The translations under genes were made by a program, and so were the position numbers. Shown one piece after another: positions 7,961-52,307 of a stretch of DNA of 64,000 bases (positions are counted from its first letter, which is position 1; every line of letters begins with the position of its first letter). The notes below the pieces were generated by a model. That model searched no databases and had not been told where the DNA came from. It saw only the letters and a list, made by a program, of their open reading frames with translations. Source of the DNA: Antechinus flavipes (Eukaryota); contig NC_067398.1 of NCBI RefSeq assembly GCF_016432865.1, positions 658,068,001 to 658,132,000 of the forward strand. Direction: 5' to 3'.

Positions 7961-9350
7961 GATGTGGTTGCTGCTGCTTCGAAAAGGGGGGATGAGATCG
8001 GGAATGAGGAAAGGCTGCAGTTGCCATAGTAACGAGGCCACGAAAGTTACATCCGTGGGGGAAGGGGAGAAAATACAGAATGCGCGTCTGCGCACAGAGC
8101 TACGCGCCCTTTCGCCATGCCCTGGAGGATCAAGGACTACATTTCCCAGGACGCTCTGCGTAGAGCACCTACGTGACGACCAAACAGGGAGGGTGAACGC
8201 CCGGGTCTTTTGGGCGCTGGGAATCTGTAGCTTCATGAATAATTAATGACGCGCGAAGAGCACTCCAAGTTACACCTAGTCTAGGAGGAGGGAGAAAGGG
8301 ACCAAAAAGCCCTTCCAGGCCCGCCCCCAGGCTTGCCTGTAACCCAGGAAAGAGACTGAGCTTTCAGAGAGGGACGAGTTCACAAGTTAGAAAAGGAGAA
8401 GGGACCAAAAAGCCCTTCCAGGCCCGCCCCCAGGCTTGCCTGTAGCCCTGGAGAGGGACTGAGCTTTCAGAGAGGGGCGAGCTAACATCCTCAGAGAAGA
8501 GTTCACAAGTTAGAGAAAGGGAAGGGACGCGGAAGGCAGCCGGCGGTTGTCATGACGACGACGCAGTCACTTCCGGATCCGGCGATGGTTAAATAGCTGG
8601 GACCGGAGCTTCAGTCCCTGTAGTCTAAGCCTGTTTGTTGTGGAGCTGTGCGTCCAGTTGTCGGGAATCTACGGATCTTCATTCAGGCCGTTCACTGCGC
8701 TCCCCGGCACTGGCCATGACGACCTTGGTGAGTGGATGAGACGGCAGCCCGTGAATGTTCAGCCGTGACTGTGTCCGCCCTGGTGTGAGTGGGGGCGTCT
8801 GGGTCCCCGTCCCCCGTGTTTGTGCGTGTGCCAACGGGAGCGGAAGGCAGCAGGGTCCCCGGGTGTGAATGCAGGGGTGTGTGTCTGTACCGGTGATTGG
8901 GAGGCACGGGGTGCCTGGGTGGGGGGACTCGGTGAGTAGCAGCATTCCCCGTGCGCGTGCCAGTGTCTGTTCCTGGGAGCCCGCCTCTGGGGGTGAGGGC
9001 GCGTGCGTGGGGGGGCGCTCTCCGCACAGCATTCGGACAGCCCCTCCCGTGTGCCTGGCTGCTGCCCGCTGGTCCCTGGGGGGCTGGTGCATTCATGCTG
9101 CGGGGGGCGCCTCCCTCCCTGAGAGTGCGAGCAGGTGGATGCGTTCGGGCGCAGGCAGGGGGCTGGGCCCCCGGTCAGTGGCTGGTGTCTGTTGGGCGTG
9201 TGTTACCGTGGGCGGCTTGTCATAGTTGTGGCCCGCTTCTCCGACTCGTGTCTCTCTCTCTGTAGGGGACCAGCAGCCAGACTGTGACCGAATATGTCGT
9301 TCGAGTTCCCAAGTGAGTTCTGCTGGGCCGGGCCGGGCGGGGAAGCTCAG
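7800..9350. promoter_or_regulatory. CpG-rich promoter of GTF2F1 copy 1
   Basis: High CpG density. X-box GTTGCCATAGTAAC 8020-8033, ZNF143-type ACTACATTTCCC 8136-8147, ATGAATAATTAATG 8235-8248, GC boxes within the 8296-8521 repeat, ETS CTTCCGG 8570-8576. Motif calls are from consensus matching only. Confidence 0.8.
8296..8521 (+). repeat. 103-bp tandem duplication in the copy 1 proximal promoter
   Basis: AAGGGACCAAAAAGCCCTTCCAGGCCCGCCCCCAGGCTTGCCTGT...GAGTTCACAAGTTAG begins at 8296 and again at 8399. The second unit carries a ~20-nt insertion. Confidence 0.93.
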
Positions 9351-12300
9351 ATCCCAGCCTCAGCTGGTTTTCTGTTCTACCTGCCTACTTTTCCTGGCCT
9401 GCTGACAATTCTTTTCCCACAGGAACAACCTCAAGAGGTACAATATTATGGCTTTCAATGCAGCTGACAAAGTCAACTTCTCCACCTGGCACCAGGTAAG
9501 TCTGGGATCGCGCCATAGTGATCTAGGAGCCTTAAGGTGGAAGGAATGAAAGCTTTGCGGCTGACTCAGAAAGCGAGGTTTGGTGATTTCCAGGCCCAGG
9601 AGTATGAGGCCTACATGGGTAGAAGAAAGGGCATCTCCCCATTCTTTCAGTTTGCCCAGTATTCGTTAGACACCTATTGTATGCTCAGTCTGTCAGTGAA
9701 CCTAACAAGATAGAAAAGAAACACAAGAAAACGGTTTCCTAATTAAATACTGGACTGCAAAAATAAGTCATAACCCTAAAAGAACACTGAGGGTAAGTTC
9801 TTAGGAAGGGCCGAAGAAGGCAGGGCTGGATCAGAGCCTGGACAGTGGAGGTGAATAGCGTAAGGCTGGACCAGCCAACTCCTGGGGGCTGCGGGAGGTG
9901 AGGCAAGATGTCCCCCCCCCCCCCAGTTCTTGCGGGGGCTCCGAGATGAGTTTGCTTCTCACGTGTCAGGCCAAGATGGAACGGGATCTGAGCAACAAGA
10001 AGATCTATCAGGAGGAAGAGATGCCAGAGTCTGGGGCTGGCAGTGAGTTTAACCGGAAGCTCCGGGATGAGGCCAGGAGGAAGAAGTACGGCATCGTTCT
10101 CAAGGCCTTCAAGGCTGAAGACCAGCCCTGGCTACTCAAAGTCAACGGCAAAACAGGCAGAAGGTGAGCGGGCCTTGGGGAGGCCCCCCCCCCTGGGTCT
10201 GGCCTTTTGTCCTCCTGGGAGGGGAAGCGGGGCTGGAGCATTCTTCCAGCTTTAGGGGATGAGGCCCCGGGGAGCTCCTGGTCTGCCTGAGGCTCTGGCC
10301 CCATCCTGGGCCATGTTCCCAACCCTGTCCGTGCCTTGAGACTCAGCGGGCTGAGAGACCTGGAGGCCCCGGAGGAGTGGCAGGGCCCGGACAGCGAAGA
10401 CATCTTTGTCCTCTTTCCTCTTGCCTGCTGCAGGTTCAAAGGAGTGAAGAAGGGCGGGGTGACAGAAAACACCTCGTACTACATCTTCACCCAGTGCCCC
10501 GACGGGGCCTTCGAAGCCTTCCCCGTGCACAACTGGTACAACTTCACTCCTCTGGCGCGGCACCGGACGCTCACCGCCGAGGAGGCCGAGGAGGAATGGG
10601 AAAGGTGAGTGGGCCGGGATAGCAGGGAGGGCCCACCTCCCATGGGGGCTCAGTCACTGCAGCCTGCGGGGGGTCCCCGGGCTCCAGCTGTGCTCCCCCC
10701 TCAGCCTTTGCGTCAGGCTGCTGTGGTAGCTCTTTATCGAACTTCCTGGGCTGTGTGATGCTCCGTGTGTCCTCTGCCTCCTAGTGGCCCTGGGTCAGAG
10801 AGCTAGTGATGGGGAAAATCCTCTTCTGCCTTTGAGAGCTTGGCCGAGTCCCCTCAGGTCCCGGGCCAGGGGACGTCTGAGTTTGCTCCGGCTCTTCTTC
10901 TGTGATCCGGGGATCCAGGGGAATGTGACAGCAGCGGATCATGGGTAGCTTTCCTAATTCCACGAGGGTTCCTGCCCCTGCTCCTTGGCTTTGGAAGGGC
11001 CTGAGACAGACAGACCCCACAGCCCTCCCAGTGCAAACAAGCCTAAGCGCGGAGGGGAAGGCAGAGAGCTCTGAGTGGGCCTCCTCAGTCAGGGAGGCTT
11101 CCGGGATAGAGGGACTGCCCCTCGTGGCGACCCCACATGATGCACAGCCTTGTTTGCAGGAGGAACAAAGTCCTGAACCACTTCAGCATCATGCAGCAGC
11201 GGCGGCTGAAGGACCAGGACCACGACGAGGATGAGGATGAGCATAAAGAGAAGAAGAGCCGGAAGAAGCCCAGTGAGCTCCGCATCCACGACCTGGAGGA
11301 CGACCTGGAGATGAGCTCTGAGGACAGCAACAGCAGTGGGGAGGAGGGTGAGCATGGGGGGCTGGGGCTGTGCCGGGGGAAAGGCCCCCAGGGATCAGTG
11401 ACCAGGACCTGACCCCGCCCTGCTCTCCCCAGGAGAGAAGGTCCCCAAGAGCAAGAAGAAGGCAGCTGCCTCCAGGGGGGGCAAGAAGAAGAAGAAGAAG
11501 GGCTCTGATGATGAGGCCTTTGAGGACAGCGATGATGGGGACTTTGAGGGCCAGGAGGTGGACTACATGTCAGATGGCTCCAGGTAAGGGACACGGGCTC
11601 CATCCCCTTCCCCCCCCAACCCCTCCCCTTCTTCCTTCCACCACCTGCTCACCTGCAGCCTGTGCTTTCCCCTGCAGCAGCTCTGAGGAGGAGGCAGTAG
11701 GGAAAACCAAGGTGGTCCAGCAGGAGGAGGACGGCCCTAAAGGTAGGTGTGGGCTTGAGGGCAGGACCCATCCCTCCCTTTGTCTTTCCTTGTGCAGAGC
11801 AGGTCGGCCAGTACTGGTTAAACGCGGGCCACTGAGGAGACTTGTGCTGGAGAGAAAAAGGCCCTGCCCTCAAAGGGTTTGTGGGGTGGGGGAGGAATGG
11901 GATAAGCTCTGCTTTCCTTATGTTGAATTGGAAACGCGTGTGGGCAACATCCAGTTGGAAAGAGAAAAAGGCAATTATGCTTAATTAAGAGATCAAAGGT
12001 AACCTTGATGACAGTGGTTGCAAAATGGAGTCCGTTTGCTTCCAAAAGCCAGGCTCCTGTAAGGAGCTGAGGAGGCAGTGGCAGGGGAGGGAGCGCTTTC
12101 CGTGAGGAAGGCTGGGAAGGAGCAGAGAGCCACAGGCCTTTAGCTGCAGAGGATGCTTTAAGCCTGGGCTAAGTCTCGGGGTGCCAGTAGCAGCAGGCAG
12201 GGGCAGGTCGGGGTCCCCGGACCAGGAGAGTGTTCTGGCTTCCCCTCAGGCATTGATGAGGAAAGTGAAAGCAGTGAGGAGAGTGAGGAGGAGAAGCCCC

Positions 12301-14376
12301 CCGAGGAGGAGGAGAAGGAGGAAGAAGATAAGAAGGTCCCCAACCCGCAGGAGAAGAAGAGGAGGAAAGGTGAGCTTGATGGCCGGAGGAGGAGCCGGCC
12401 CGGCGTTCGAGGCCTTCACGCTGCCTCTGCGCAGCCGGGTCCCCAGGGTCCCCAGATGCCCTCTTGGCTGACGGTTCCCTGGCCCTCCCTTCAGGCGCCC
12501 CCACTCCCCGCTCCTCTTGTGCTTAGTGCTAATCCTCTCCCTGGCCCCTAAGCTGCTGGGGGAAATGCACCAGGAAGCCCCAGAAGCCCCCAGGACTCCC
12601 CAAAAGCTCTCCTTACCCCCAAAACCTCTCGGACTCCCCCAATTTCCCTGCCTCCCCCAGCTCCCCTCCTTGGAGCCCCAGGTCCCCTCCTTGGAGCCCC
12701 AGCTCCCCTCCCTGCCTCCTCTGGCCTGGCCCAGCTTTCCCTGCCAGGGCAGCCCACAGTTAAGGCCGCTTCTTGGGCTGGGTTCTGTACCTGCCAGTAC
12801 CCGCCACCAGGCCAGCTCCCTGAGGGCAGAGTCCGGGCGAGATGCCCCTTTGCCCGCCCCGGGACTCTGGGGGGCGGGCCGGGGCTCAGGCTCCCTTTTG
12901 CCCCTCAGGAGACAGCAGCGAGGAGTCGGACACCTCCGAGGAGAGCGACATCGACAACGAGGCGTCCTCGGCCCTCTTCATGACCGTGAGTATGGCCCGG
13001 GGGGAGCCCCGGCGGGCTCGTCTTTGCCTTTCCCCGGCTCAGTCTCCCTTACCCCTTTCTGCAGAAGAAGAAGACTCCCCCCAAGAGGGAGCGGAAGGCC
13101 TCGGGCAGCAGCTCCAGGGGCAACAGCCGCCCGAGCACTCCCAGCGTGGACAGCGGCAGCACGTCCTCCACCCTGCGGGCAGCCGCCAGCAAGCTGGAGC
13201 AAGGTGAGGCGGGCCCCGGCCTCCCCCGCTCCCCCATGAGCCCGTGTCCCCCAGGGGCCAGGAGCGGGCCCCCGTCTCTCCCTCCCCTTTTCGGGCACTT
13301 TCCCAGCTTCTCTTTGGGAGGTTCTGTTGGCCCCTCTGAGGCCAGACAAGCTCATTTTGGGGGTACAGGGGCAGGGGCCCAGACCTGGGAGGGGAGAGCG
13401 CCCCCCTCTGCCACTGCAGTGTGTTGTTGAGTCCTGGGACCCACTTTGTGCGCACAGTGACAAGGGGGACGGCCCCGAGGAAGGTGGCCGGGATGGCATG
13501 GGCCTTGGAAGCAAAGTCCAGGGAGGCCAGGCCCGCGCTTGAGCCCCCGTCCTCTGGCTCAGAGAGAGGGGCCAGGGAGGCCTTTGGAGGCTCCTGAAGG
13601 AGGGGCTCCTGCTCAGGTGTAGAGAAGCCTGAGCTCTGAGAGACCCCTCCAGCTCTGACCTGGGGTTTGACGTTTCCATGCAGGGAAGCGGCAGACGGGA
13701 CCCAGTGATACGCCCGCCGCCAAGCGCCTGAGGCTGGATGCCGGGCCCCAGAGCATCTCGGGGAAATCCACGCCCCAGCCTCAGTCCGGCAAGTCCACGC
13801 CCAGCAGTGGGTGAGTAAGGGGCCATTTGGGGGAGGTTGGGGGAACTGGGCAGCAGCAGGTGAGTAAGGGGCCATTTGGGGGAGGTTGGGGGAGCTGGGC
13901 AGCAGTGGGTGAGTAAGGGGCCATTTGGGGGGGTTGGGGGAGCTGGGCAGCAGTGGGTGAGTAAGGGGCCATTTGGGGGAGGTTGGGGGAGCTGGGCAGC
14001 AGTGGGTGAATAAGGGGCCATTTGGGGGGTTTGGGGCCGGGCTGGGCAGCAGCGGGCAAGGGGCCACTTCTAGGACCTGGAGCTGGCCTGGACAGTAATG
14101 AGTAAGGGGCCGTTTCTGGGATCTGGGCAACAGAACCTCCGCCCCCTGACCCCCGGCCTTTCTCCCTCCAGTGATGTGCAGGTGACAGAGGACGCGGTCA
14201 GGCGCTACCTGACCCGAAAGCCCATGACCACCAAGGACCTGCTGAAGAAGTTCCAGACCAAGAAGACGGGGCTCAGCAGCGACCAGACAGTCAACGTGCT
14301 GGCCCAGATCTTGAAGCGCCTCAACCCGGAGCGCAAGATGATCAATGACAAGATGCACTTCTCCCTCAAGGAGTGA
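8716..14376 (+). CDS. GTF2F1: General transcription factor IIF subunit 1 (RAP74), upstream copy 1, intact, 522 aa
   Basis: 13 GT-AG exons: 8716-8727, 9266-9312, 9423-9495, 9970-10163, 10434-10604, 11160-11347, 11433-11583, 11678-11742, 12250-12369, 12909-12985, 13065-13203, 13684-13810, 14172-14376. Total 1569 nt with consistent phases. Reads MTTLGTSSQTVTEYVVRVPKNNLKRYNIMAFNAADKVNF...FQCPDGAFEAFPVHNWYNFTP...DVQVTEDAVRRYLTRKPMTTKDLLKKF...KMHFSLKE*. AATAAA at 14402-14407. Confidence 0.96.
12655..12711 (+). repeat. 21-bp tandem repeat in GTF2F1 copy 1 intron 9
   Basis: CCCCAG(C/G)TCCCCTCCTTGGAG repeated about 2.7 times. Copy 2 has only one unit. Confidence 0.85.
13802..14046 (+). repeat. ~49-bp G-rich minisatellite spanning the exon 12 donor, 5 units (copy 1)
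   Basis: Unit CAGCAGTGG|GTGAGTAAGGGGCCATTTGGGGGAGGTTGGGGGAGCTGGG starts at 13802, 13851, 13900, 13948 and 13997. Degenerate units follow. Confidence 0.95.
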
Positions 14377-15381
14377 GCGGCCGCCGGGACACAGCAGGGC
14401 CAATAAAAGCTGCTTGGCCTTTTTCTCGGGCTCTGTGTGACTTTGTGGGGGGGAGGATTGTGGGTTTGGGAGCCGGTGTCCCGAGAGAACGTCGGGGGCA
14501 GCTCCCCGACTACAGGTGGGGAAACTGAGGCCCAGAGAAGCAAAGGGACTGGTCCGGGCTGTTAGGCCCTGCCCCCCTTCCTCATCCCCGCAGGACTGCC
14601 TTCCACCAAGGGATTTGGTCTGGAATCCAGGTGTGGAAACTTCCCTTCCTGCAGCGTCCCCTCCCCACGCCGCACTTGGCGGCTGCCGGGAATGTCTGGC
14701 ACGTCAGGCTAATTCTTGGGAAATGTCTGGCGTTCCCAGGAGGAGACTCCTGTTCCCCATCTCCTCACCCCCACCTTGGAGGGGAACATCCAAGAGGAAA
14801 CAGCTCATCTGCACCCCCGGCTCGCTTCTCGCCCTCCCCCCCTCCTAAACACAGGCCCGGCTTTCAGGGACTGGGGTCTGACAGCTTGGTTCTCTGCCTA
14901 GCAACAGGGGCTGAAGGGGATCCCCAGCCTCACTCTGCCCTCTCCCCCGGACCGTTGTGGAAGAACACCAAGTTCCCTGGCCTAATAATCTGTGGCTCAG
15001 TGAAGGGAAAATGTGGCCTCTGGTGGGGTGTTTCCTGTTTTGATGTTGGAGCAGGCAGGCCGGAGACAGGGGCATGATGCCTTAATCCCTCCTGCTCAAG
15101 TTGGAGCCCGGAACCTAGGAAGGGCGGAGGAGGGATTGCCCAGCATCTGTTGCACGTGTGCTCTTTCTCCCCGCTTACCCCTGCCCCCCACTTTCCCCAG
15201 GGATTTGCTTTGAATAATCTGTCCCATGGAGAAAACTTCTTCCCCTCTTTCTCTCCCAGCCATTACTGGTGCTCTGGGAGTGCATAAATGACGGTTAAGT
15301 TGACGGTGGTGATTGGGGGAAAAGCATGGCTAGAATCTCCCAACCTGTCATCTCTTGCCCTATTTTCAGGAAGGAGGGGAT

Positions 15382-18519: not shown

Positions 18520-18820
18520 CCAGACAGAGGAAGAAAAAGAGGGAAGAAAGGGAAAGAAATTAAAAAAAAATAGAGAGAGAGAGAAGGAGGGAGAGATAAA
18601 CAGAAGGGAAGAAAGGAAGAAGAGAGAGAAAGGAGAAAGGGAGAAAAAGAAAAGGAGAGGTGAAAGAGAGGGAAGAAAGGAAAAAAAGAGAAGGAAAGAA
18701 GGAGAGGGAGAAAAAAGAGAAGAGAGAAAAGGAGATGGAAAAGGAAAAGAGGAAGGAGAGAGGGAAGGTAGAAAGTAGGATGGAGGAAAGACAGAGCGAA
18801 GAAGGGAAGGGAAGGAGAGG
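18520..18820. repeat. Polypurine low-complexity tract (similar tracts at 31630-31990 and 33590-33790)
   Basis: GA/GGAA/GAGA runs. These explain the K/E/R-rich and S/L/F-rich spurious ORFs. Confidence 0.95.
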
Positions 18821-21800: not shown

Positions 21801-22039
21801 TAATTTAGACCTTCCCCAGTTAATCCCCTTCCTTAGATCTACTTGGCTACCAAGGACCTAAGATCCCATCAACATCAGTGATACTGTTTAATAGTCGCCT
21901 AGATTGTACCATTTGTAGATATTTTGGTCTTATTAGAATTCACTTCTGAAATGGGATTTTTATGAATCTTGACCAAATTTATTCTCATATTTAAGATTTT
22001 ATTTTTAAATAATTAGTTAAAAGTATTCTCTACAAGCCA

Positions 22040-27010: not shown

Positions 27011-27028
27011 TCAAGAATGAAGAACCAG

Positions 27029-33100: not shown

Positions 33101-34825
33101 CAGCAGTTAGCTGAAATAAAAGTACAAAAAAAAAAAAAATCAGAAGAATCAATTCTGTTCTAGTGACCAGATCTTAGAACTTAGCATTTTAATGTATTTT
33201 TACTAGTAAGTGATAAATCTTCAAAACAGTGGGATTTTAAACTGAACTTTTCCCCGTGTACTAAAAAAGCAGGACAGTGAGAACTTGGGTAACTAGGACT
33301 AGACATCATCTGCCTTTCCTGTTTCATTCCCTAGAAATAAGCCTTTAAATAACACCTACTATGTGCCAGACATTGTGCTGTCTCCTCCCCTTTTTTTAAA
33401 CTAAAAATTATCTCATTTGATCCTCACAACAACTCTGCAAGGTAGGTACTATTATTATCCCCACTTTATAGCTGAGGAAACTGAGGCAGACAGAAGTTAA
33501 GTGACTTGCCCAGAGTCATACAGGGAGTAAGTATTTGAGGCCAGATTTGAAATCAGGTCTTCCTGACTCCAGGATTGCATCACCAGCTGCCCTTAAGAGA
33601 GAGAGAAGGGAGTGATGGGGAAAGAGGTGAGGAGAGTGACAGAGACAGAGAGAAACACACAGAGACAGAAGGTGATAGAGACAGAAAGAAACAGAAACAA
33701 GAGAGAAAGAAAAAGGAGGAGCAGGAGGAGGAGAGAGAGGGGGTAAGGGAGGGCAGAGAAAGAGAAATGGAGGAGAGAGATTTGAGGAGAATGAAAGCTC
33801 AACCCTCCAAGGAGACACAGTGTAGTCTTGAGGAGAAGGGAGATGTGAGTACAAGTCAGCCAGCTTTGCTTTTCAGGGTATCAGCTATTAGTTTATATGA
33901 GTATCCTGGGGTTTAGGGCTGGATTTTACAGAGGGAATTGAGCACCCCGGGAGGCTGTGACTTATCCACAGTGGCCCAGAGCTGATAGTCAAACTCTGGT
34001 CTTCTGAAAAGTTATTATTCTTCCCATTGTACCACACAGACTCCTCTCTCTAGGCCCCCATCTCTGTCCTCCAAGGATGGGAAAGAACTGGGTCCCTTCT
34101 CTATAGCCCTGTAGGACTCATAATGCCCTTTCTTCATGACAACCCCTGGAAGTATTAGATGGCACAAGAATTATATTAGCGCTGTTTTATAGTTGAGGAA
34201 AAAGGCTCCACAGGTCGCTGGGCTTGCCCAGGCTCACGCAGCTAGCAGGCATCTGAATCCTGATTTAAACCCAGGTCGCCCAGTCTCCCCGGCTGGCACT
34301 TGTCCAACTGCCCATTGCTGCCCATAACATCTTATAGGGAGAGACAATCAGTGAGACAATGTGTCCAGGGGCGCCCCGTAAGTAAGAATTTGAAGATGGG
34401 ATTGGAATCCAATTTTCTTGTCTCCACTACTCTATTCCACTACTCTCAGCTGCCTTCTGATAATTCTGATCAAGAACTGAACAAGAAAATAAATCATGGG
34501 TTATCAGAACTGGAAGGGAGTACTCCTGAAACAGACCCACAGAGGGGCGGTGACTGGGACCCCAAAAGAGTGGCAGGACCAGCCCTTGGAGACTTGGCCC
34601 ATCCCTGGCTAACGTGGATGTTTTAGGTGATTCTCAGGGGACACAGGTCTGGCCCATTGCGTTTCTTGACTTTGCTGTACAGGGGTATCCCAGGCCCCCT
34701 CCTTTTTACCTCATGGAGGGCCCCAGGAAGTGTCTCTTGGTAATGCTGAGGCTCTGGGCTGTCCTGGCGGTGTAGCATCTTGGAGCTGTGGACCTCCAGT
34801 GAGGGTGGGGGGAGAGCTTCTGGTT

Positions 34826-37800
34826 CTACTGCAGACTGTCAATGACGGAACAGCATTTGGCAAAGATATTTTCTGCAGCGTCTTCTGCCAGGATCTGAAG
34901 GAGTGTTAGGTATAGAGGGGGAAGGGTCAGCCCCAGGCCAGGGGAGGAGGGACCCCTGTTTCTTACTTCCCGCCAAGTGCATCACTACCACCAGCCCATA
35001 CTCAGAAATGGGGATTACTTGTCATGGGAGGCAGAGCTTTCAGGGACGTCAGATATCAACCCCATTCATTTTTCAGATAAGGAAACTGAGAAATCTCAAG
35101 ATCACATGAGCACAACAAATTTGAGAGTCAGGATCTGAATCCAAGTTGCTCTGACTTCAAATGCAGGCCCCATTCAACTACATCATTATTTTCTGCTTTA
35201 AGGAAACCTGACATCTAAAAATGCCATTTCCTTCAACATCAGAGGTGGAAGCTAGATCTGTCTCCCCTGCTCTAGGCTGCTTTCTGGTAATTCTGATCAA
35301 AATCTAAAGAAGATATCATGCAGTTTATGATCTGCTAATAAGATTAGCAGTAATCACCTCTCATTGGCTATAAAATTAAATAGTAATTTTCTATTTTAAA
35401 ACGGCTGAAGAGGAGAATAAATCATGGGATATCAGAACTGGAAACGAGCACCCTTAAAACAGACCTTCAGAGGGGGTGGTGACTTGGACTCAAATGGCAA
35501 CCCATCCCTGGCTAATGTGGGTATTTTAGGGTACCCATAATTGCTCATGATTCTCAGGGGACAAGAGTCTATTCCCTTTTCCATTTTTCAAATGGAAAAA
35601 AATGAGTCATTGAAAAGGAAAGTCCCAGAACTAGGAAAAATGAGTTGAAATTGCAAGTGGACAAATTTAAGTTTGAGGTATTGAAAAACTACCACATAAT
35701 TAGAGCTATCTTAGAATGGGATGCTCAGACCAGTGACTTGTGCCTCACTAACAATAGCTAATAATAATAAGCATTTGTATAGCACTTACTATGTGCCAGA
35801 CACTTTATTGTCTATCATCCTCCTCACATTGTCCCCCACTTTGCAGATGAGGTACCGAGGCAAACGGAGGTCGAGGGGCTTGCCTGCAAGGAGTCTGCCT
35901 CCAAGCCCAACCTGGATGGCATTTTTCAGGCTGGTTGGGGTTCAGGAGAGGTTGAGCTGGGCCTTGGGGTCCCCTCCCTTCCAACTTAAGATTCTATGAC
36001 TCAGACTAATGGAGCTAGAAGGAATTTAGATCACAGAATGTAGAATGTTAAGAGTTGGGGGAACCTTAGCTCATAGAACACAGAATGCCGGAGCACAGAG
36101 GGAACTTGGACATCATCCAGCCCGCCCCCCCTTATCTTACAATCTTGAAAGGAAAAGCTTCAAAGAGGGAAAATGGTTTGCTTTAGGTCACGAACCAAGT
36201 GGCCGAGCCACTATTGAGCCCAGTCCTGGGGCTGGGATCTTTCGGTTTGCTTCTTACTGTGCTGCCATCCAGACTTCCCTGTAAATGGAAGCAGAGACCC
36301 TCCCCTTTTCCTCTGCCCTCTCCCAGCTGGGATCATTTCGCTCCCCCCCCCCCTTTTACAGGTGAAGGCCTGAGCACAGGCCGTAGGAGCACCTACATTC
36401 CGGAGAAGGTTTTTCTGCTGGTAGAAAGCCAGGATGGGCTCGCACAGGGTGTAATGGGTCTCCAGCCGCTGGCGTACAATGTCCTCAGCATCGTCCTCAC
36501 GGTGCTCTTCCTGGCCTCGAAGCAACACCCGGTGAATCATGGTCTCCGTGGAGCAGTCGAAGACAATGACGATGTTGGGGGAGCGGCCCACCTGGTGGGG
36601 TGAGGCAAGGGAAGAGGCTGCAGGGGTTCCCCCCCTCCCCATCCCCCCGCCAGTCTCAGAGACGCTGACTGAGAGAGCAGCGAGGGCCTAGCTAGCAGTA
36701 GTTATGAAGAGGGTAGATGGGCCTTCCAAGAGTCAGGGGCCTGTCTTTGGAGGTGCTCAAGAGGAGAATGGATGGCCATGCTTGGGGATGTCGGAGGGAA
36801 CGGCCCTACTTGTTGGCTCACTCACACATGAAAAATCAGTAATAATAATGGTGATGAGTAGTAACATTTACATAGTGTTTATTAGGCTCCAGGCCCTGTG
36901 CTCTAAGCTTCTGATCCAAAATGGCACCTGGGAGGCAGGTGCTATTATCCCATTTTACAGATGAGGTAACTGAGGTAAACAGAGACTTAATAACTTGCCC
37001 AGAGTCACAGAAGTAGTAAAAATCCAAATTAACCTTTTTGAGTAGGTTTTGTTGAGGGGGGAGGGTTTCTTTGTATTTTTAACTCTGAGACTCCTTCTGT
37101 GAATGTCAAAGGAAGAGTAGTGGACAAGGAATCAGAAGGTCTGGGTTCAAAACCCAAACTTTCCCTTTCTGGGCTTCAGTTTCTGCATTTGTAAAATGAT
37201 TAGATTTGAGCTAAATGATCTTTTAGGTCTCTCTTATCTCAAAAAACTATGAAACACATGCCTGTGTGACCTTTATAAGTCACTTACCTCAAACTTTGTG
37301 GGCCCTGGTTTTCCATTTGTAAAATGGGAATAAAATGGGAATCTCCCCAAAAAAATCCTATTAAGAAAATGTTCTGTAAACTGCAGAACACTACAAATAA
37401 GTATTGCTATTACTGTTATTATAGGTAATATCAAAAATCAAGTTTTTATAGCAACTTTTACAAAGTGTATTTTTTTTCTATAATAACTCTGTGTGATAAG
37501 TTGTGTCTCCATTTTTAAAGAGCGGGGAAAGTTATGTTTTTATGGGAGGAAAGTTGGCAAAGTTGATGAGAGTGTTGGCCCTAGAGTCAGGAGGACCTGA
37601 GTTCAAATCCAGCTTCAGATACTCACTAGCTATGTGACCCTAGGCAATTACTTAACCCTGTTTGCCTCAGTTTCCTCATTTGTAAAAATGAGCCAGACAA
37701 GGAAATGGCAAAATTACTCCAGTGTGTCTGCCAAGAAAAATCCCAAATAGGGTCACGAAGAGTCAGACATGACTTAGACTCAAAAGCAAACTTATGTTTA

Positions 37801-40408
37801 AAGAAACTAAGCAATTTACCACGAGGTCTTCTGCTGACCAATTTTTTCTTTGCTTTTTAAAAATTCATTGTTGCAAAGCATAGATTTGGAAATAAAAGTG
37901 ATAAACAAAAGCTATCTGGTTTTTTTAATTGCCCAAGACCACATCATGGTCCTGGTTTCTTAATTCCAAGGCTCTGAATCTAATTTTTTTTTCTTTAGAA
38001 ATTGAACCCAAATTTGTTGCATTTTGCTTCATTTTCATCACTTTAGATCTGGAGGAGATCCTAGAGATCATGGAGTCCAACTGGCTCGTTTTACAGATGG
38101 GAACACTGAGGCTGTGAGACAGAAGGCAATATTTGCCTGCCATTACACAGGTCCTAAGGGGGCACAGACTCTCACTCCAAATTCACTGGGTCTTTCTAGC
38201 ACACTGCACTGCCTTTCCAAAGATCACCTTTCTCCCTGTTTTCAACTCATTCAACCAAGCATTCTCTGCCACCGTTTTCCAGTCCCTCCTAATTCCAATG
38301 CCTTCCCTCTGTTGATTCCATCCGGTATCTTGTGATTTTTGCTTGCTTGTTTGTACCTGTTTGTTGGCATGTTGTCTCCCTTTATATTATGAGCTCCTTG
38401 AGAAAAGGAACACCGCAGGCACTTAATAAATACTGGAAAGACTGCTGGAGGACTCCAAAGAATAAAAGGATCTTTCCGTTTTGCAATTCCCTGTTCTTTG
38501 ACCCGAAATAGGAAGAGTCTGCGCCGGCTGCATCTGCACGGCCTGGTTCAGGTCCTCAGCCACCTGGATGACTCGCCCCTTCTTCCCTCCACTTCCTGTC
38601 CCAGACCCCATAAAGGTGATTTCTCTAGAACACAGCAGGTCTTGACCCCATTGGGGTTATTAGATTGTGATTTATTATCAGTAAATGTTTGATTTACAGG
38701 CCTATTTTATGTACCTATATACCTGAGGGTCATGTAAACATTTCTTGAGCAAGAAGGGAGTGGAAAAAGTTTAAGAAGCCCCGCTTTAGGGGCAGCTCGG
38801 TGGCGCCGTGGGTAGGGCACCAGCCCTGAAGTTCGGAGGCCCTGAGTCAACTCTGGCCTCAGACACTTAGCACTTCCTGTCTGTGTGACCCTGGGCAAGT
38901 CACTTAACCCCAACTGTCTCAGCAAAAAAAAAAAAAAAAAAAAAAGGCGGCGGCGGCCCTGCTCTGGAAGGGAGGAGGAGGGAGGGAGATGGCCGGACCC
39001 TGCGCTCCTGCCTGGCGGGTGGGAAGGAGGTGTCCGCTGGAATCTCGGGTTTCCTCAGGGCGGTTACAGTCGGGGGTGGGAGGTGGGCCGAGAAGATGGC
39101 TGAGCTGGCGAAGGCTGGGAGGAAGCAGACACTTACAATGCGCTCAAACTCCTTGGCTTGGCTGAGCTCCCGAGGGAATCCATCTATGAGAAAGCCCTTG
39201 CTGTTTGGGCGGGACAACATGTTGTCACTCACCATGTCCAGAATCACACCCTGCGGGGCAGAGACTGGGCATTAGGGAGGCCACGTGGGTCCTGCACTAA
39301 CTTGCTAAGGGGACTTTGGGAGCTTTGCTGTCATGGGAACCACGGCGTTTACAGCTGGGAAAACTGAGACCTAGCGCCCCGGTGCTGGACTCCAGTGTCA
39401 CAATTTAAAGGAGATTTAAACAATCTGACTGCTCCACACCCGGCTCTTTCCACAGCTGCTTCAGTCATATCTGGAAAATGGACCTGGTTTCCCACCCCAT
39501 GCAATTAGCTACCCAGGCCCAAGGACACAATCGCTCAAATCTGTGAAATGGGTATAATGGCCCGTTCCGTTCCTATGGGCCAGAGAAGAGCCCTTTGAAA
39601 TGCCGTGAGGAAGGACTCGGGCCAACCCTCTAAGCTCTGGCCACAAAGGCAGAGCTGTGGGGAGCAGGGGAGACGTTAGGTGCTCACCGTGGGCACCAGC
39701 AGGCCCTTCAGCATGATGTCCCGGATCAGCTGGCCCCGCACAGTCGCCTGATTTGCCTCCTCCCTCAAAAGCTCCCCAAGGCCCACGTGGCAGAAGCCGT
39801 ACTTGGCTGCCATGTTCTCACATTGTGTCCCCTTGCCACAGCCTGGTCCCCCCATTACGAAGATGATCCGATAGGACTTGAGCAGATCTGGGGAGGGGGA
39901 GGAAGAAGGTAAGCTGGCCTGTGTATGCAGTTGGCACATATATGTGCATGCTTACTCTTGTGCTTGCTGCATACAGAATGTGGGTGCCACCTTCTGTTAC
40001 AGAATCATACCATGTAGAGCTGGCGGGGATCATATGGTCTCATACAGTGAGAAAACTAAGACTTAGTCTTTGCCAAAGATTTAAACCCAGGCCTTCTGAC
40101 TGCAAGGCTGGCACTGTCCACCAACTCACGGGTTTACATTGGCAAGGAGGGAGGACCCCTAAACAAGGAAGAGGGAGGAAGGCTCCAAGTGGTGTCCCTT
40201 CGACTTTTCTCCCCATGGCTTCTCCCCCAACCCCTCAAGGAAAGGCACCGGGTTTTCTGCCTGGATTCTGGCCCCCTCCGCTCGGCCACGGGCGTGTGGG
40301 TAGGGTAGGGGGGAGCTGGACCCCCAGAAGGGTGCCTAGAGATTTACCCTTCTGCTGAGGCCTCAGGGGTTTTCCCACCTGGGGCAGCTTGGAATGGCAT
40401 CTGCCCAT
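34826..40408 (-). CDS. Adenylate kinase isoenzyme 1-like protein, 212 aa, intact
   Basis: Exons (minus strand) 40348-40408, 39688-39887, 39137-39250, 36397-36591, 34826-34894. Total 639 nt, all GT-AG, phases consistent. Protein: MGRCHSKLPQVGKPLRPQQKDLLKSYRIIFVMGGPGCGKGTQCENMAAKYGFCHVGLGELLREE...GFLIDGFPRELSQAKEFERIVGRSPNIVIVFDCSTETMIHRVLLRGQEEHREDDAEDIVRQRLETHY...ILAEDAAENIFAKCCSVIDSLQ*. Contains the P-loop, the GFLIDGxPR motif and LID arginines. The last three intron positions match AK1. ATG context is gaagATGG. The first-exon assignment is less certain than the others. Confidence 0.9.
37575..37775 (+). mobile_element. MAR1-type CORE-SINE (similar copies at about 23138-23365, 42275-42510, 61900-62060, and 63160-63320 on the minus strand)
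   Basis: CORE TGTGACCCTAGGCAA..TTTCCTCATTTGTAAAATG followed by GGAAATGGCAAA..CTCCAGT..GCCAAGAAAA..GGGTCACGAAGAGTCAGACA. Confidence 0.8.
38789..38944 (+). mobile_element. WSINE1-like SINE in an AK1-like intron
   Basis: GGGGCAGCTCGGTGGCGCCGTGG..CCCCAACTGTCTCAGC followed by a long pure poly-A. CpGs are retained, suggesting a young insertion. Confidence 0.9.
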
Positions 40409-45849: not shown

Positions 45850-47500
45850 CAAGCTAAGGAGATTCGGCCTTCCCTCCTCAGTCACGCTGGGACCCATCTC
45901 CCCGAACCCGCTGCAGTTTTAACACGCGGGAACAGTATAATACGGCAGCCCAAAAGCTCGCGGAATCCGAGGCTGCAGAGAGACGCCCCCCGGAGGAGAC
46001 TGTCTTGCGGCACACAGCAAACCGGGTGTGCTTGCGCTTGCGCTTGGGCCGGGGAGCGCAGTTAGAGAGGAGCGGGAGGCGACCCGCGGAACCACCACGG
46101 AGGAGCTGGACTGGCTGCCTTTCAGTCTTTTGGAAGCAGGATAGCCCTGGGTCGTTTAGCGCCACGGGGGATAAACAGGTGGCAGCGTCAGTGAGGCAAA
46201 TTAAAGCTTGCTATAAAAGAAAAGTTCCTGACCGAGCTGTACAAAAGTAGCATGGCAGCTCCTCCCACGGGGGGAGTTTCTGAGCAGCGGCTGGATGGGC
46301 ACTTTCACAGGTTGTGCCGCAGAGAGGGTTGGACCAGAGCCCCTAAGGTCCGCACCAGCTCCAAAGAGGTGGATGCTGCTGTTTGCAGGAAGGGGGAAGG
46401 GAGAGGAAGCCTAGAGTGCAGTTGCCATGGCCTCGCAGTTGCCGTGACAACTCAACGAGAGAAACTGCAGGGAGAGTGCGCCTGCGCACAGGGCTCGGGC
46501 TCTCTTCCCCATGTCCGGGAGATTCAAGAACTACGAATCCCGAGATGCGCCACTACAACGAAAATCCTGCGAATGCCCACAGATAGTTCTACAAGATAAC
46601 GACACAGGAAATGCCTGGGTCAGTCCAGCGCCTCATGAATAATTAATGAAGCACGATTGACTCCTTTCCCAAGACCGAGGATGGGAAAGAGACCCATTCC
46701 GCCTCCGCAGCGCCCACACCCAGGCTTGTCTACGTTGTGGGGAAGGGGCTGCGCCTTCTGGAGACATATTTGCACAAACCTGGAAGCTTGCAATGGCTCG
46801 CCGCTTGGATCGGGTTTGATCCACTCCCGTAAGGCCGTCAACGGTTGTCAAGACGACGACGCGGAAAGTTTAGTTTCCGGGTCAAGCCGCGGCGCTTGCT
46901 GGGACTCCAAGTTTACAGTGGTGGCTCTTCCTTGTTTGAGGTAGGGACCTGGCCGGCGTCTTCGGGGTTCGGAGGGAGATTAGGAGCGGAGTGCGCGACG
47001 ATTTTTGACCCTCCACGCGGTCACGCAGCGGGCCCAACTTTGGACAAGATGACGAGTTTGGTGAGTGGGTGGGAGCGGCGTGCGTGGGACCCCCTCCGTC
47101 CCCGGCCCCTGTCCCGTGGGGGTAGTGACTCGTGACCACTAGCTCACGAGCTCGCTTGTATTAGGCGCCCGCTGTGTGCTGTACACGACGCTAAGCCCTG
47201 CTAATGCAAAGCAAATCGGAGGCCATCCGCCCTCCAGATCTCCTTGTCCGCGCGGATGCCCCCGTTGGTGCGCTGCAGTTGCGGGCCCGGGAGTCAGCCT
47301 TCCTGGGCGCGGCTGTGCCCGTCCCAGACGCTCCTTTCGGACCATGGGCAGCCTTGCATTTTAAAGGGGCGCACTTCTCCGACTCGTGTCTCTCTCTCTG
47401 TAGGGGACCAGCAGTCAGACTGTGACTGAATATGTCGTTCGAGTTCCCAAGTGAGTTCTGCTGGGGATGGGGAGCGGGGGGTGGGGGGACGGCTCAGATC
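45850..47500. promoter_or_regulatory. CpG-rich, probably bidirectional promoter (GTF2F1 copy 2 rightward, AK1-like leftward)
   Basis: CpG-rich. X-box GTTGCCGTGACAAC 46438-46451, NRF1 TGCGCCTGCGCA 46477-46488, ACTACGAATCCC 46530-46541, ATGAATAATTAATG 46635-46648, TTTCCGG 46874-46880. Use for the leftward gene is inferred. Confidence 0.75.
45930..46365 (+). mobile_element. L3/CR1 3' relic at the equivalent position in the copy 2 promoter
   Basis: CAGTATAATACGGCAGCCCAAAAG..GAGGCTGCA, ATTAAAGCTTGCTATA and GAGGGTTGGACC..AAGGTC are colinear with 7430-7960. Confidence 0.6.
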
Positions 47501-50500
47501 CCAGCCCCGGCTTCCGTCCTGTTTCTTGCCTTTCCTGGCCTGCTAACAATTCTCTTCCTACAGAAACAACCTCAAGAGGTACAATATTATGGCTTTCAAT
47601 GCAGCTGACAAAGTCAACTTCTCCACCTGGCACCAGGTAAGTCTGGGATTCTGGCACAGTCTAGAAGCCTTAAGGTAAATGGAAAGGAGACTCGAACCCA
47701 CAGCTAGGAGCGGGGGTTGGTGAGCTTCTGAGCTCAGGGGGGTGAGGTCTGCACGGGCAGAGGAGAGGGCGTCTCACTTTTGTCAGTCCCTCAGCGACAT
47801 ATTCAATTGCAATTTTTGCTCAGGTTGTCATTTGAAATACAAGAGAAACATAAGAGGAAAAAAATCTCTCCTCAGCACCAAATAAGGTAACTAAGTAAGT
47901 GTTAGGCTAGAAAGCTCAGACAGGACTGTAGATCATGGAGGCCATTGTATAGGAAAGGCAGCCTGAAGAAGGCAGGGCTGGATCAGAGCCTGGACAGTGG
48001 AGGTGAATAGCGTAAGGCTGGACCAGCCAACTCCTGGGGGCTGCGGGAGGTGAGGCAAGATGTCCCCCCAGTTCTTGCGGGGGCTCCGAGATGAGTTTGC
48101 TTCTCACGTGTCAGGCCAAGATGGAACGGGATCTGAGCAACAAGAAGATCTATCAGGAGGAAGAGATGCCAGAGTCTGGGGCTGGCAGTGAGTTTAACCG
48201 GAAGCTCCGGGATGAGGCCAGGAGGAAGAAGTACGGCATCGTTCTCAAGGCCTTCAAGGCTGAAGACCAGCCCTGGCTACTCAAAGTCAACGGCAAAACA
48301 GGCAGAAGGTGAGCGGGCCTTGGGGAGGCCCCTCCCCCCCGGGTCTGGCCTTTTGTCCTCCTGGGAGGGGAAGCGGGGCTGGAGCATTCTTCCAGCTTTA
48401 GGGGATGAGGCCCCGGGGAGCTCCTGGTCTGCCTGAGGCTCTGGCCCCATCCTGGGCCATGTTCCCAACCCTGTCAGTGCCTTGAGACTCAGCGGGCTGA
48501 GAGACCTGGAGGCCCCAGAGGAGTGGCAGGGCCCGGACAGCGAAGACATCTTTGTCCTCTTTCCTCTTGCCTGCTGCAGGTTCAAGGGAGTGAAGAAGGG
48601 CGGGGTGACAGAAAACACCTCGTACTACATCTTCACCCAGTGCCCCGACGGGGCCTTCGAAGCCTTCCCCGTGCACAACTGGTACAACTTCACTCCTCTG
48701 GCGCGGCACCGGACGCTCACCGCCGAGGAGGCCGAGGAGGAATGGGAAAGGTGAGTGGGCCGGGATAGCAGGGAGGGCCCACCTCCCATGGGGGCTCAGT
48801 CACTGCAGCCTGCGGGGGGTCCCCGGGCTCCAGCTGCGCTCCCCCCTCAGCCTTTGCGTCAGGCTGCTGTGGTAGCTCTTTATTGAACTTCCTGGGCCGT
48901 GTGATGCTCCGTGTGTCCTCTGCCTCCTAGTGGCCCTGGGTCAGAGAGCTTCTGCCTTTGAGAGCTTGGCCGAGTCCCCTCAGGTCCCGGGCCAGGGGAC
49001 GTCTGAGTTTGCTCCGGCTCTTCTTCTGTGATCCGGGGATCCAGGGGAATGTGACAGCAGCGGATCATGGGTAGCTTTCCTAATTCCACGAGGGTTCCTG
49101 CCCCTGCTCCTTGGCTTTGGAAGGGCCTGAGACAGACAGACCCCACAGCCCTCCCAGTGCAAACAAGCCTAAGCGCGGAGGGAAAGGCAGAGAGCTCTGA
49201 GTGGGCCTCCTCAGTCAGGGAGGCTTCCTGGATAGAGGGACTGCCCCTCGTGGCGACCCCACATGATGCACAGCCTTGTTTGCAGGAGGAACAAAGTCCT
49301 GAACCACTTCAGCATCATGCAGCAGCGGCGGCTGAAGGACCAGGACCACGACGAGGATGAGGATGAGCATAAAGAGAAGAAGAGCCGGAAGAAGCCCAGT
49401 GAGCTCCGCATCCACGACCTGGAGGACGACCTGGAGATGAGCTCTGAGGACAGCAACAGCAGTGGGGAGGAGGGTGAGCATGGGGGGCTGGGGCTGTGCC
49501 GGGGGAAAGGCCCCCAGGGATCAGTGACCAGGACCTGACCCCGCCCTGCTCTCCCCAGGAGAGAAGGTCCCCAAGAGCAAGAAGAAGGCGGCTGCCTCCA
49601 GGGGGGGCAAGAAGAAGAAGAAGAAGGGCTCTGATGATGAGGCCTTTGAGGACAGCGATGATGGGGACTTTGAGGGCCAGGAGGTGGACTACATGTCAGA
49701 TGGCTCCAGGTAAGGGACACGGGCTCCATCCCCTCCCCCCCCCCCAACCCCTCCCCTTCTTCCTTCCACCACCTGCTCACCTGCAGCCTGTGCTTTCCCC
49801 TGCAGCAGCTCTGAGGAGGAGGCAGTAGGGAAAACCAAGGTGGTCCAGCAGGAGGAGGACGGCCCTAAAGGTAGGTGTGGGCTTGAGGGCAGGACCCATC
49901 CCTCCCTTTGTCTTTCCTTGTGCAGAGCAGGTCGGCCAGTACTGGTTAAACGCGGGCCACTGAGGAGACTTGTGCTGGAGAGAAAAAGGCCCTGCCCTCA
50001 AAGGGTTTGTGGGGTGGGGGAGGAATGGGATAAGCTCTGCTTTCCTTATGTTGAATTGGAAACGCGTGTGGGCAACATCCAGTTGGAAAGAGAAAAAGGC
50101 AATTATGCTTAATTAAGAGATCAATGGTAACCTTGATGACAGTGGTTGCAAAATGGAGTTCGTTTGCTTCCAAAAGCCAGGCTCCTGTAAGGAGCTGAGG
50201 AGGCAGTGGCAGGGGAGGGAGCGCTTTCCGTGAGGAAGGCTGGGAAGGAGCAGAGAGCCACAGGCCTTTAGCTGCAGAGGATGCTTTAAGCCTGGGCTAA
50301 GTCTCGGGGTGCCAGTAGCAGCAGGCAGGGGCAGGTCGGGGTCCCCGGACCAGGAGAGTGTTCTGGCTTCCCCTCAGGCATTGATGAGGAAAGTGAAAGC
50401 AGTGAGGAGAGTGAGGAGGAGAAGCCCCCCGAGGAGGAGGAGAAGGAGGAAGAAGATAAGAAGGTCCCCAACCCGCAGGAGAAGAAGAGGAGGAAAGGTG

Positions 50501-52307
50501 AGCTTGATGGCCGGAGGAGGAGCCGGCCCGGCGTTCGAGGCCTTCACGCTGCCTCTGCGCAGCCGGGTCCCCAGGGTCCCCAGATGCCCTCTTGGCTGAC
50601 GGTTCCCTGGCCCTCCCTTCAGGCGCCCCCACTCCCCGTTCCCCTTGTGCTTAGTGCTAATCCTCTCCCTGGCCCCTAAGCTATTGGGGGAAATGCGCTC
50701 GGAGGCCCCAGAAGCCCCCAGGACTCCCCAAAAGCTCTCCTCCTTACCCCCCAAAACCTCTCGGACTCCCCCAACTTCCCTGCCTCCCCCAGGTCCCCTC
50801 CCTGCCTCCTCTGGCCTGGCCCAGCTTTCCCTGCCGGGGCAGCCCACAGTTAAGGCCGCTTCTTGGGCTGGGTTCTGTACCTGCCAGTACCCGCCACCAG
50901 GCCAGCTCCCTGAGGGCAGAGTCCGGGCGAGATGCCCCTTTGCCCGCCCCGGGACTGAGGGAGCCGGGACTCTGGGGGGCGGGCCGGGGCTCAGGCTCCC
51001 TTTTGCCCCTCAGGAGACAGCAGCGAGGAGTCGGACACCTCCGAGGAGAGCGACATCGACAACGAGGCGTCCTCGGCCCTCTTCATGACCGTGAGTATGG
51101 CCCGGGGGGAGCCCCGGCGGGCTCGTCTTTGCCCTTCCCCGGCTCAGTCTCCCTTACCCCTTTCTGCAGAAGAAGAAGACCCCCCCCAAGAGGGAGCGGA
51201 AGGCCTCGGGCAGCAGCTCCAGGGGCAACAGCCGCCCGAGCACTCCCAGCGTGGACAGCGGCAGCACGTCCTCCACCCTGCGGGCAGCCGCCAGCAAGCT
51301 GGAGCAAGGTGAGGCGGGCCCCGGCCTCCCCCGCTCCCCCATGAGCCCGTGTCCCCCAGGGGCCCGCTCCTGGCCCCTGTCTCTCCCTCCCCTTTTCGGG
51401 CACTTTCCCAGCTTCTTTTTGGGAGGTTCTGTTGGCCCCTCTGAGGCCAGACAAGCTCATTTTGGGGGTACAGGGGCAGGGGCCCAGACCTGGGAGGGGA
51501 GAGCGCCCCCCTCTGCCACTGCAGTGTGTTGTTGAGTCCTGGGGCCCACTTTGTGCGCACAGTGACAAGGGGAACGGCCCCGAGGAAGCAAAGTCCAGGG
51601 AGGCCAGGCCCGCGGTTGAGCCCCCGTCCTCTGGCTCAGAGAGAGGGGCCGGGGAGGCCTTTGGAGGCTCCTGAAGGAGGGGCTCCTGCTCAGGTGTAGA
51701 GAAGCCTGAGCTCTGAGAGACCCCTCCAGCTCTGACCTGGGGTTTGACGTTTCCATGCAGGGAAGCGGCAGACGGGACCCAGTGATACGCCCGCCGCCAA
51801 GCGCCTGAGGCTGGATGCCGGGCCCCAGAGCATCTCGGGGAAATCCACGCCACAGCCTCAGTCCGGCAAGTCCACGCCCAGCAGTGGGTGAGTAAGGGGC
51901 CATTTGGGGGGGTTGGGGGAGCTGGGCAGCAGTGGGTGAGTAAGGGGCCATTTGGGGGGTTTTGGGGCCGGGCTGGGCAGCAGCGGGCAAGGGGCCACTT
52001 CTAGGACCTGGAGCTGGCCTGGACAGTAATGAGTAAGGGGCCGTTTCTGGGATCTGGGCAGCAGAACCTCCGCCCCCTGACCCCCGGCCTTTCTCCCTCC
52101 AGTGATGTGCAGGTGACAGAGGACGCGGTCAGGCGCTACCTGACCCGAAAGCCCATGACCACCAAGGACCTGCTGAAGAAGTTCCAGACCAAGAAGACAG
52201 GGCTCAGCAGCGACCAGACAGTCAACGTGCTGGCCCAGATCTTGAAGCGCCTCAACCCGGAGCGCAAGATGATCAATGACAAGATGCACTTCTCCCTCAA
52301 GGAGTGA
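47049..52307 (+). CDS. GTF2F1: General transcription factor IIF subunit 1 (RAP74), copy 2 in the ancestral position next to PSPN, intact, 522 aa
   Basis: Exons 47049-47060, 47404-47450, 47564-47636, 48115-48308, 48580-48750, 49286-49473, 49559-49709, 49806-49870, 50378-50497, 51014-51090, 51170-51308, 51761-51887, 52103-52307. Exon lengths match copy 1. Starts MTSL. AATAAA at 52333-52338. Confidence 0.97.

Follow-up and report, generated by a model that had tools for sequence, protein, structure and literature searches.

A tandem pair of GTF2F1 genes in marsupials, probably of stem-marsupial age, with gene bodies kept alike by conversion behind separately evolving promoters

Introduction

RAP74 (TFIIF alpha), the product of GTF2F1, is usually regarded as a single-copy, dosage-sensitive core factor. 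The stretch of DNA analysed here (the window), 64,000 nucleotides of the marsupial Antechinus flavipes at ~658.07 Mb on CM028217.1 (assembly GCA_016432865.2; N count 0), carries two GTF2F1 genes on the forward strand, which lie 38.3 kb apart and are almost identical in their coding sequence (CDS). The locus raises the question of how old this pair is, what keeps its members so alike, and whether the upstream gene (copy 1, annotated as GTF2F1-like) does any work beside the downstream one (copy 2, annotated as GTF2F1). The answer that emerges is most likely an old duplication of the whole unit, in which the gene body has been held alike by conversion, the promoters have diverged and both genes are functional.

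Gene structure and encoded protein

Gene models were built from self-BLAST, tblastn with full-length mammalian RAP74 (P0007) and a reading of the splice contexts. Stop-to-stop open reading frames on the forward strand contain RAP74-like exons in both repeats. Every exon is matched twice, in agreement with the original prediction of two intact GTF2F1 genes in tandem, and the architecture that had been predicted for them stands as well: each copy has 13 coding exons, GT-AG boundaries at 12 of 12 introns, an open frame, one AATAAA polyadenylation signal 26 nt past the stop codon, and a CpG-rich promoter of its own (GC 0.56-0.63 and a CpG observed/expected ratio, o/e, of 0.66-0.95 around the ATG). 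Position 8716 is the A of the copy 1 ATG, and position 52307 is the final base of the copy 2 stop codon.

8716..14376, forward strand: copy 1 CDS (tblastn, splice contexts; XP_051827716.1; 12 junctions matched in the retrocopies described below)
8716-8727, 9266-9312, 9423-9495, 9970-10163, 10434-10604, 11160-11347, 11433-11583, 11678-11742, 12250-12369, 12909-12985, 13065-13203, 13684-13810, 14172-14376, forward strand: copy 1 exons (gene model)
14402..14407, forward strand: copy 1 poly(A) signal AATAAA (poly(A) tails of the retrocopies start ~15 nt after the signal)
47049..52307, forward strand: copy 2 CDS (tblastn, splice contexts; XP_051827715.1)
47049-47060, 47404-47450, 47564-47636, 48115-48308, 48580-48750, 49286-49473, 49559-49709, 49806-49870, 50378-50497, 51014-51090, 51170-51308, 51761-51887, 52103-52307, forward strand: copy 2 exons (gene model)
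52333..52338, forward strand: copy 2 poly(A) signal AATAAA (from the sequence)
13802..14056 (copy 1, 5.2 units) and 51879-51987 (copy 2, 2.2 units), forward strand: 49-bp minisatellite at the exon 12 donor (TRF)

Each CDS comprises 1569 nt and encodes 522 amino acids, and the translations are identical to the RefSeq proteins XP_051827716.1 (copy 1, GTF2F1-like) and XP_051827715.1 (copy 2, GTF2F1). Comparison of the copies shows 10 differing nucleotides in the 1569-nt CDS; nine are silent, and the tenth (T3 -> S3) accounts for the single residue that differs between the proteins. Marsupial RAP74 starts with MTTLG or MTSLG, encoded by the 12-nt coding part of exon 1; a start codon in exon 2, suggested by a "WAAL" resemblance, was dropped in favour of the true ATG in exon 1.

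Both copies match the Pfam family PF05793 at full length (copy 1, E 1.8e-197, profile positions 5-528 of 528; copy 2, E 1.3e-197). Searches against Protein Data Bank chains were made with residues 1-120 and 430-522. Residues 3-120, the N-terminal RAP30-dimerisation (triple-barrel) domain, align gap-free to 1F3U chain B (E 1.3e-65), and residues 430-522, the C-terminal winged helix, align to human residues 425-517 and to 1NHA, 1I27 and 2K7L (E 1e-38 to 1e-51); over these N- and C-terminal domains, the solved chains of human RAP74 are 85-95% identical to the marsupial proteins. Both copies encode full-length RAP74.

Two local features of the gene body bear on splicing. Exon 10 begins at a tandem acceptor, CAG/GAG, at 12906-12911 in copy 1 and 51011-51016 in copy 2; use of the upstream AG yields the 522-residue protein seen in RefSeq and in the retrocopies, and use of the downstream AG yields 521 residues, with one Gly fewer. 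The 522- and 521-residue lengths are both annotated as isoforms in Sarcophilus, Petaurus and Gracilinanus. A copy 1 exon 10 acceptor placed at 12912 was replaced by 12909, since the retrocopies and RefSeq proteins show the 522-residue form. The minisatellite starts within the last codons of exon 12, every unit repeats the donor CAGCAGTGG/GTGAGTAAGG, and splicing at a donor in a downstream unit would shift the reading frame.

Gene conversion

Self-BLAST returns a direct repeat of ~5.35 kb (9802-15160 against 47950-53089) at 97-99% identity, together with a weaker match on its 5' side (9230-9538 against 47368-47676, 86% identity). A more sensitive self-BLAST aligns 7892-8140 to 46297-46534 (68% identity) and 9230-15160 to 47368-53089, and the paralogous homology stops sharply at 15160 and 53089, respectively. 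The duplicated unit and the part of it that has been homogenised are delimited as follows.

7892..15160, forward strand: duplication unit, copy 1, ~7.3 kb, comprising promoter, whole gene and 0.8 kb of 3' flank (sensitive self-BLAST)
46297..53089, forward strand: duplication unit, copy 2, at the ancestral position adjoining PSPN (self-BLAST, gene order)
9813..15160, forward strand: conversion tract, copy 1, which takes in the final 157 nt of intron 3 and ends 0.8 kb beyond the stop (substitutions, tract tree)
47961..53089, forward strand: conversion tract, copy 2 (self-BLAST, limits)

A MAFFT alignment was made of the six genes from Antechinus (A), Sminthopsis (S) and Dromiciops (D), including 1.5 kb of flanking sequence per gene, and maximum-likelihood trees with ultrafast bootstrap support (UFBoot) were computed for these three genera from 714 gap-free promoter sites and 4499 tract sites. 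The tract tree groups the sequences by species, as (A1,A2), (S1,S2) and (D1,D2), each with UFBoot 100, and tract identities reach 99-100% between paralogues as against 83-95% (A-S) and 60-86% (A-D or S-D) between orthologues. In the promoters this relation is reversed, orthologues being 63-88% and paralogues 48-65% identical. The Antechinus tracts differ by 51 substitutions in 5.35 kb (0.95%) and several indels; among the substitutions, copy 1 accounts for 20 derived changes and copy 2 for 18, and the divergence between paralogues is ~0.75% in Sminthopsis and ~0.04% in Dromiciops.

The introns follow the same division. Introns 4-12 of Antechinus are 97-100% identical between copies, and introns 1, 2 and 3 are 54%, 79% and 71% identical, respectively. 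Intron 4-12 lengths are specific to the species and alike in both paralogues (intron 8 measures 507/507, 1807/1802 and 1275/1275 nt in A, S and D), while the intron 1 of copy 1 exceeds that of copy 2 by ~170-195 nt in each of the three genera. In Antechinus the change in identity is abrupt, and the youthful-looking part of the unit is confined to its 3' three-quarters. On its 5' side the tract is bounded at ~9232 in Sminthopsis, 9813 in Antechinus and ~9897 in Dromiciops, and the 3' limit (~15150-15160 in A, S and D) coincides with the end of the duplicated unit. Because intron 3 of Sminthopsis copy 2 resembles that of Antechinus copy 1, copy 1 acted as the donor in Sminthopsis.

Across exons 1-3 the paralogues are identical at 127-131 of 132 positions, the adjoining introns being 50-79% identical, and some species-specific silent changes are common to both paralogues; this suggests that exons 2-3, too, were touched by short conversions of older date. 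At the protein level, paralogues are 0-2 residues apart in seven species as against 3-21 residues between species, and within-species grouping of paralogues recurs in several further species in the protein tree. The near-identity of the copies is a result of recurrent interlocus gene conversion and not of youth. The whole GTF2F1 unit (~7.3 kb) is present twice, with copy 1 set 38 kb upstream of the ancestral copy 2. Its part between intron 3 and the 3' boundary has been homogenised repeatedly and independently in each lineage, with differing 5' limits, which keeps the two proteins of a species 0-2 residues apart. The promoter, 5' untranslated region (5'UTR), exon 1 and intron 1 have escaped conversion and form two separate orthologous lineages. 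Both genes would be active and would jointly supply RAP74.

Promoters

The regions upstream of the two start codons have the following features.

8000..8715, forward strand: copy 1 CpG-island promoter and 5'UTR (CpG o/e 0.66-0.73 at GC 0.56-0.63)
~8548-8580, forward strand: copy 1 core block GTTGTCAnGACGACGACGC...CTTCCGG (conserved in 6 of 6 genes of the three species)
8568-8715, forward strand: copy 1 5'UTR, at least (89% identical to the 5' end of both retrocopies)
46400..47048, forward strand: copy 2 CpG-island promoter and 5'UTR (CpG o/e 0.85-1.16 over 46800-47400; core block present)

Antechinus, Sminthopsis and Dromiciops all retain a CpG island at each of the two promoters, and both promoters contain a shared core motif of ~60 bp with an ETS-type site. 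Upstream of the ATG, the CpG o/e is 0.87-1.02 in copy 2 as against 0.66-0.73 in copy 1 in all three species. The promoter tree groups the sequences by copy, as ((A1,S1),D1) and ((A2,S2),D2) with UFBoot 100, so that the Antechinus copy 2 promoter joins the Sminthopsis and Dromiciops copy 2 promoters with full support. The paralogue distances in this tree (~0.75) are about twofold those between Antechinus and Dromiciops orthologues (~0.36). The copy 1 promoter also contains a direct repeat of ~104 bp, 93% identical, at 8291-8481, just upstream of the core block.

Ancestral position and neighbouring genes

The genes around the pair are listed below.

34826..40408 (putative span), reverse strand: adenylate-kinase-like (ADK-like) gene between the copies (open reading frame pieces resemble AK1)
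53418-54425, forward strand: PSPN (persephin), ordered as in other mammals
54144..54419, forward strand: mature-domain exon of PSPN, downstream of copy 2 (tblastn 56% identity, E 9e-31)
~56374-57024, reverse strand: ALKBH7, after copy 2, with order and orientation as in other mammals
~60100-62700, reverse strand: CLPP, after copy 2, with order and orientation as in other mammals

The order ADK-like (-), GTF2F1 (+), PSPN (+), ALKBH7 (-), CLPP (-) is found in Monodelphis, Petaurus, Sminthopsis and Dromiciops, and the other GTF2F1 gene of these four genera has no called neighbour within 10 kb; Antechinus shows the same gene order, apart from a wider gap. The copies lie 39.6 kb apart in Sminthopsis and 44.5 kb apart in Dromiciops. 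GTF2F1 is preceded by a PF00406 gene in platypus as well as in Monodelphis, Petaurus, Sminthopsis and Dromiciops, and a TGF_beta gene comes after copy 2 in the other species. In platypus, viewed 10 kb on each side, there is one GTF2F1, located between the ADK-like gene and PSPN. Since the single platypus gene occupies this very place, copy 2 is at the ancestral site, and copy 1 is the gene set 38 kb upstream, beyond the ADK-like gene. To our knowledge, the ADK-like gene is absent from the human GTF2F1 locus.

Duplication of a block comprising the ADK-like gene and GTF2F1, followed by loss of one ADK-like gene, was considered and set aside, as no ADK relic lies near copy 1: neither upstream of copy 1 nor in the interval 15-34 kb was one found, only interspersed repeats being matched. 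Likewise, no PSPN relic was found 3' of copy 1.

The spacer includes purine-rich low-complexity tracts (18500-18890, 31470-32140 and 33520-33910) that give spurious long open reading frames, E/K/R- or S/L/F-rich, on either strand, and that also gave weak false tblastn matches to the acidic region of RAP74. One database protein (P0021) consists of RAP74 fused to the C-terminus of persephin and is probably a read-through model over the adjacent GTF2F1 and PSPN genes of some vertebrate.

Age and distribution of the pair

A search with mammalian RAP74 (P0007) and a cluster listing yield at least two gene models for GTF2F1, placed on a single chromosome or contig, for each of Sminthopsis, Sarcophilus, Notamacropus, Petaurus, Gracilinanus, Monodelphis, Dromiciops and Antechinus, and a "like" model of GTF2F1 is also annotated in Macrotis. 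The duplicate had been presented as a feature of one marsupial lineage. That restriction falls, as the pair is common to Dasyuromorphia, Diprotodontia and Microbiotheria and, by gene order, to Didelphimorphia.

The grouping of promoters by copy places the duplication, on sequence grounds, before the split between dasyurids and Dromiciops. It probably arose in the marsupial stem, because the gene order is shared with opossum, the platypus gene is single and the paralogue distance is about twice that between Antechinus and Dromiciops; the promoter tree behind this further step covers Antechinus, Sminthopsis and Dromiciops.

When it was predicted, no description of the pair was known. A literature search for a GTF2F1 paralogue found no paper, but both genes already exist as RefSeq models, in eight other marsupial genera as well as here. 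The tandem pair under concerted evolution is well known as a kind, for instance from the alpha-globin genes, and this pair is visible in RefSeq. New here are the identity of the gene, how old and how widespread the pair is, and the evidence for the "like" copy as a real, transcribed, orthologous gene.

Retrocopies of copy 1

Two intronless GTF2F1-like open reading frames are present elsewhere in the Antechinus genome, one (L005) at CM028217.1 ~419.2 Mb and the other (L006) at CM028218.1 ~12.16 Mb. The first spans L005:5001-6560 (1560 nt, 519 amino acids) and the second L006:5001-6557 (1557 nt, 518 amino acids). Both reproduce 12 of 12 exon junctions and carry an A-rich tail ~15 nt past the AATAAA signal; in both, a 27-nt stretch that includes the parental stop codon is missing, and the frame closes at the TAA within AATAAA. 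Their 5' ends match the copy 1 5'UTR (8568-8715) at 130 of 146 and 129 of 145 positions, respectively, and neither 5' end has a match in copy 2. At the place that corresponds to the copy 1 promoter repeat, the retrocopies have a different expansion, of GATGAGTTAACACC... units.

By these characteristics both sequences are processed retrocopies, made from a copy 1 mRNA that had been correctly spliced and polyadenylated. This mRNA must have been present in the germline when they formed. Their silent-site distance to the parent is ~0.09-0.12, both frames are open, and the ratio of nonsynonymous to synonymous substitution rates (dN/dS) is 0.31 and 0.51 against the parent and 0.55 between the two. 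Since their flanking sequences are alike beyond the poly(A) tail, one of them is probably a DNA-level copy of the other. Intact relatives on long branches also occur in Sarcophilus (527 amino acids) and Vombatus (513 amino acids).

Function and retention of copy 1

Copy 1 looks functional by several features of its sequence. In the part that has not been converted, the ATG, the exon 1 donor, the splice sites of exons 2-3 and the core block are intact in Antechinus, Sminthopsis and Dromiciops, and its CpG island has an o/e of 0.66-0.87 and a GC of 0.56-0.67 around the ATG in the same species. Within the tract, the differences accumulated since the last conversion number 5 in exons as against 46 in non-coding sequence (P = 0.003), all five exonic differences being silent, and copy 1-derived changes are depleted in exons (2 observed as against 6.6 expected, P = 0.04).

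Several points weigh against an old pair with two functional members. Conversion can keep even a silent copy intact-looking over exons 4-13, and the constraint signal that belongs to copy 1 alone is modest because conversion could refresh these exons and seems to have touched exons 2-3. Four sequencing runs contain words of the copy 1 5'UTR but were not counted as transcription; in two of the four, 81% of the words from 8000-9800 are present, promoter and introns included, so that these runs may be DNA. As to age, Monodelphis and Petaurus are known by their gene lists, so that copy-by-copy orthology by DNA sequence reaches as deep as Dromiciops, and the single-copy count in platypus rests on 10 kb each side of the gene.

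As reasons for retention, the original prediction had named dosage selection and tissue-specialised expression. The preferred explanation, evenly poised as it is, is dosage sharing, with one protein supplied from two broadly active promoters of the housekeeping type; broad expression and dosage sharing are favoured because both CpG-island promoters hold the same core motifs. A more tentative proposal is regulatory partition, in which the two promoters would drive the same protein in separate tissues or at separate stages (germline or early embryo as against soma, for instance) and this division, not total dose, would preserve both genes. It draws on the low identity of the promoters outside the ~60-bp core (48-65%), which have nonetheless been conserved by copy over more than 60 My, on the CpG-richer island of copy 2 upstream of the ATG in all three species, and on the germline expression of copy 1 implied by the retrocopies; the CpG islands and core motifs common to both promoters, typical of broad expression, speak against it. 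A tissue-specific paralogue of the kind known for other general transcription factors would be expected to have a diverged protein, and here one residue differs in 522.

It is improbable that copy 1 is instead a passenger, silent or nearly so, with its frame refreshed by conversion from copy 2. Its exons 4-13 do lie inside the converted tract, where intactness says little about copy 1 alone, but the CpG island, core block, ATG and exon 1 donor outside the tract are intact in all three species, the retrocopies prove the former existence of a spliced, polyadenylated copy 1 mRNA, copy 1 also served as donor for intron 3 of Sminthopsis copy 2, and copy 1-derived substitutions avoid exons.

An assembly artefact, with a single 5.3-kb tract placed twice or two haplotypes set side by side, deserves very little credence. 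The A. flavipes assembly was produced from PacBio continuous long reads (CLR) with wtdbg2 and short-read polishing (PMC9290055), a method that can mis-handle 99%-identical repeats. However, the tracts differ by the substitutions and indels given above, stand in unique flanks and lie in a gap-free window; annotation in Monodelphis and Petaurus places two genes on one contig; runs of three other organisms contain 13-35% of the words of the copy 1 private region; and mis-assembly is judged very unlikely because three independent assemblies, read as sequence or by gene order, agree in this arrangement, those of Sminthopsis and Dromiciops having two full genes 39.6 and 44.5 kb apart. Equally hard to credit, for Australidelphia, are independent recent duplications in each marsupial lineage, which would account for the near-identity of paralogues within every species but not for a promoter tree that groups by copy with full support, an intron 1 length difference (~170-195 nt longer in copy 1) common to three species, or a placement with respect to the ADK-like gene and PSPN that recurs in four genera.

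Comparison with known systems

Human, mouse and platypus have a single-copy GTF2F1 with the same layout of 13 coding exons, the same neighbour PSPN and the same Pfam family; compared with this state, marsupials have one more complete gene, which lies 38-45 kb upstream and has a promoter of its own. Among tandem pairs, the human alpha-globin genes HBA1/HBA2 and gamma-globin genes HBG1/HBG2 are old duplicates whose coding sequences are kept identical or near-identical by conversion with sharp limits and whose flanks are distinct. The GTF2F1 pair resembles these globin pairs in being an old tandem duplicate subject to conversion, with distinct regulatory or flanking sequence; unlike them, it encodes a basal factor, its copies are separated by 38 kb and an unrelated gene, and it has been converted independently in at least three marsupial orders.

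GTF2A1L (ALF), TBPL1, TBPL2, TAF4B, TAF7L and TAF9B are diverged proteins with gonad-biased expression. They are similar to the GTF2F1 pair in representing a retained second gene for a basal Pol II component; however, the two marsupial RAP74 genes encode the same protein (0-2 differences). The Antechinus retrocopies, in turn, are like those of other housekeeping genes in being intronless and polyadenylated and in carrying a parental 5'UTR, and differ from the usual case in that their main interest here is to identify copy 1, and not copy 2, as the transcribed parent.

Significance

The presence of a second complete gene across marsupials indicates that the basal Pol II machinery tolerates, and perhaps exploits, a duplicated subunit. 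The locus offers a clean natural case of long-term concerted evolution, with sharp limits, a promoter control and replicates in several orders, and so lends itself to estimates of conversion rate and tract length in marsupials. In practical terms, the label "GTF2F1-like" hides a true orthologous gene, for which consistent naming is possible, and expression and variant calls made from short reads over exons 4-13 will be assigned to the wrong copy unless copy-specific 5' exons are used. More speculatively, and at present with doubt outweighing confidence, marsupials as a group might for at least 80 My have relied on two promoters under different regulation to express RAP74, with conversion keeping one protein and regulation divided; such a division may concern germline or early embryo versus soma, parent of origin or dosage control. 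If true, the divided regulation of one RAP74 protein would be a mode of basal-factor regulation without a eutherian counterpart.

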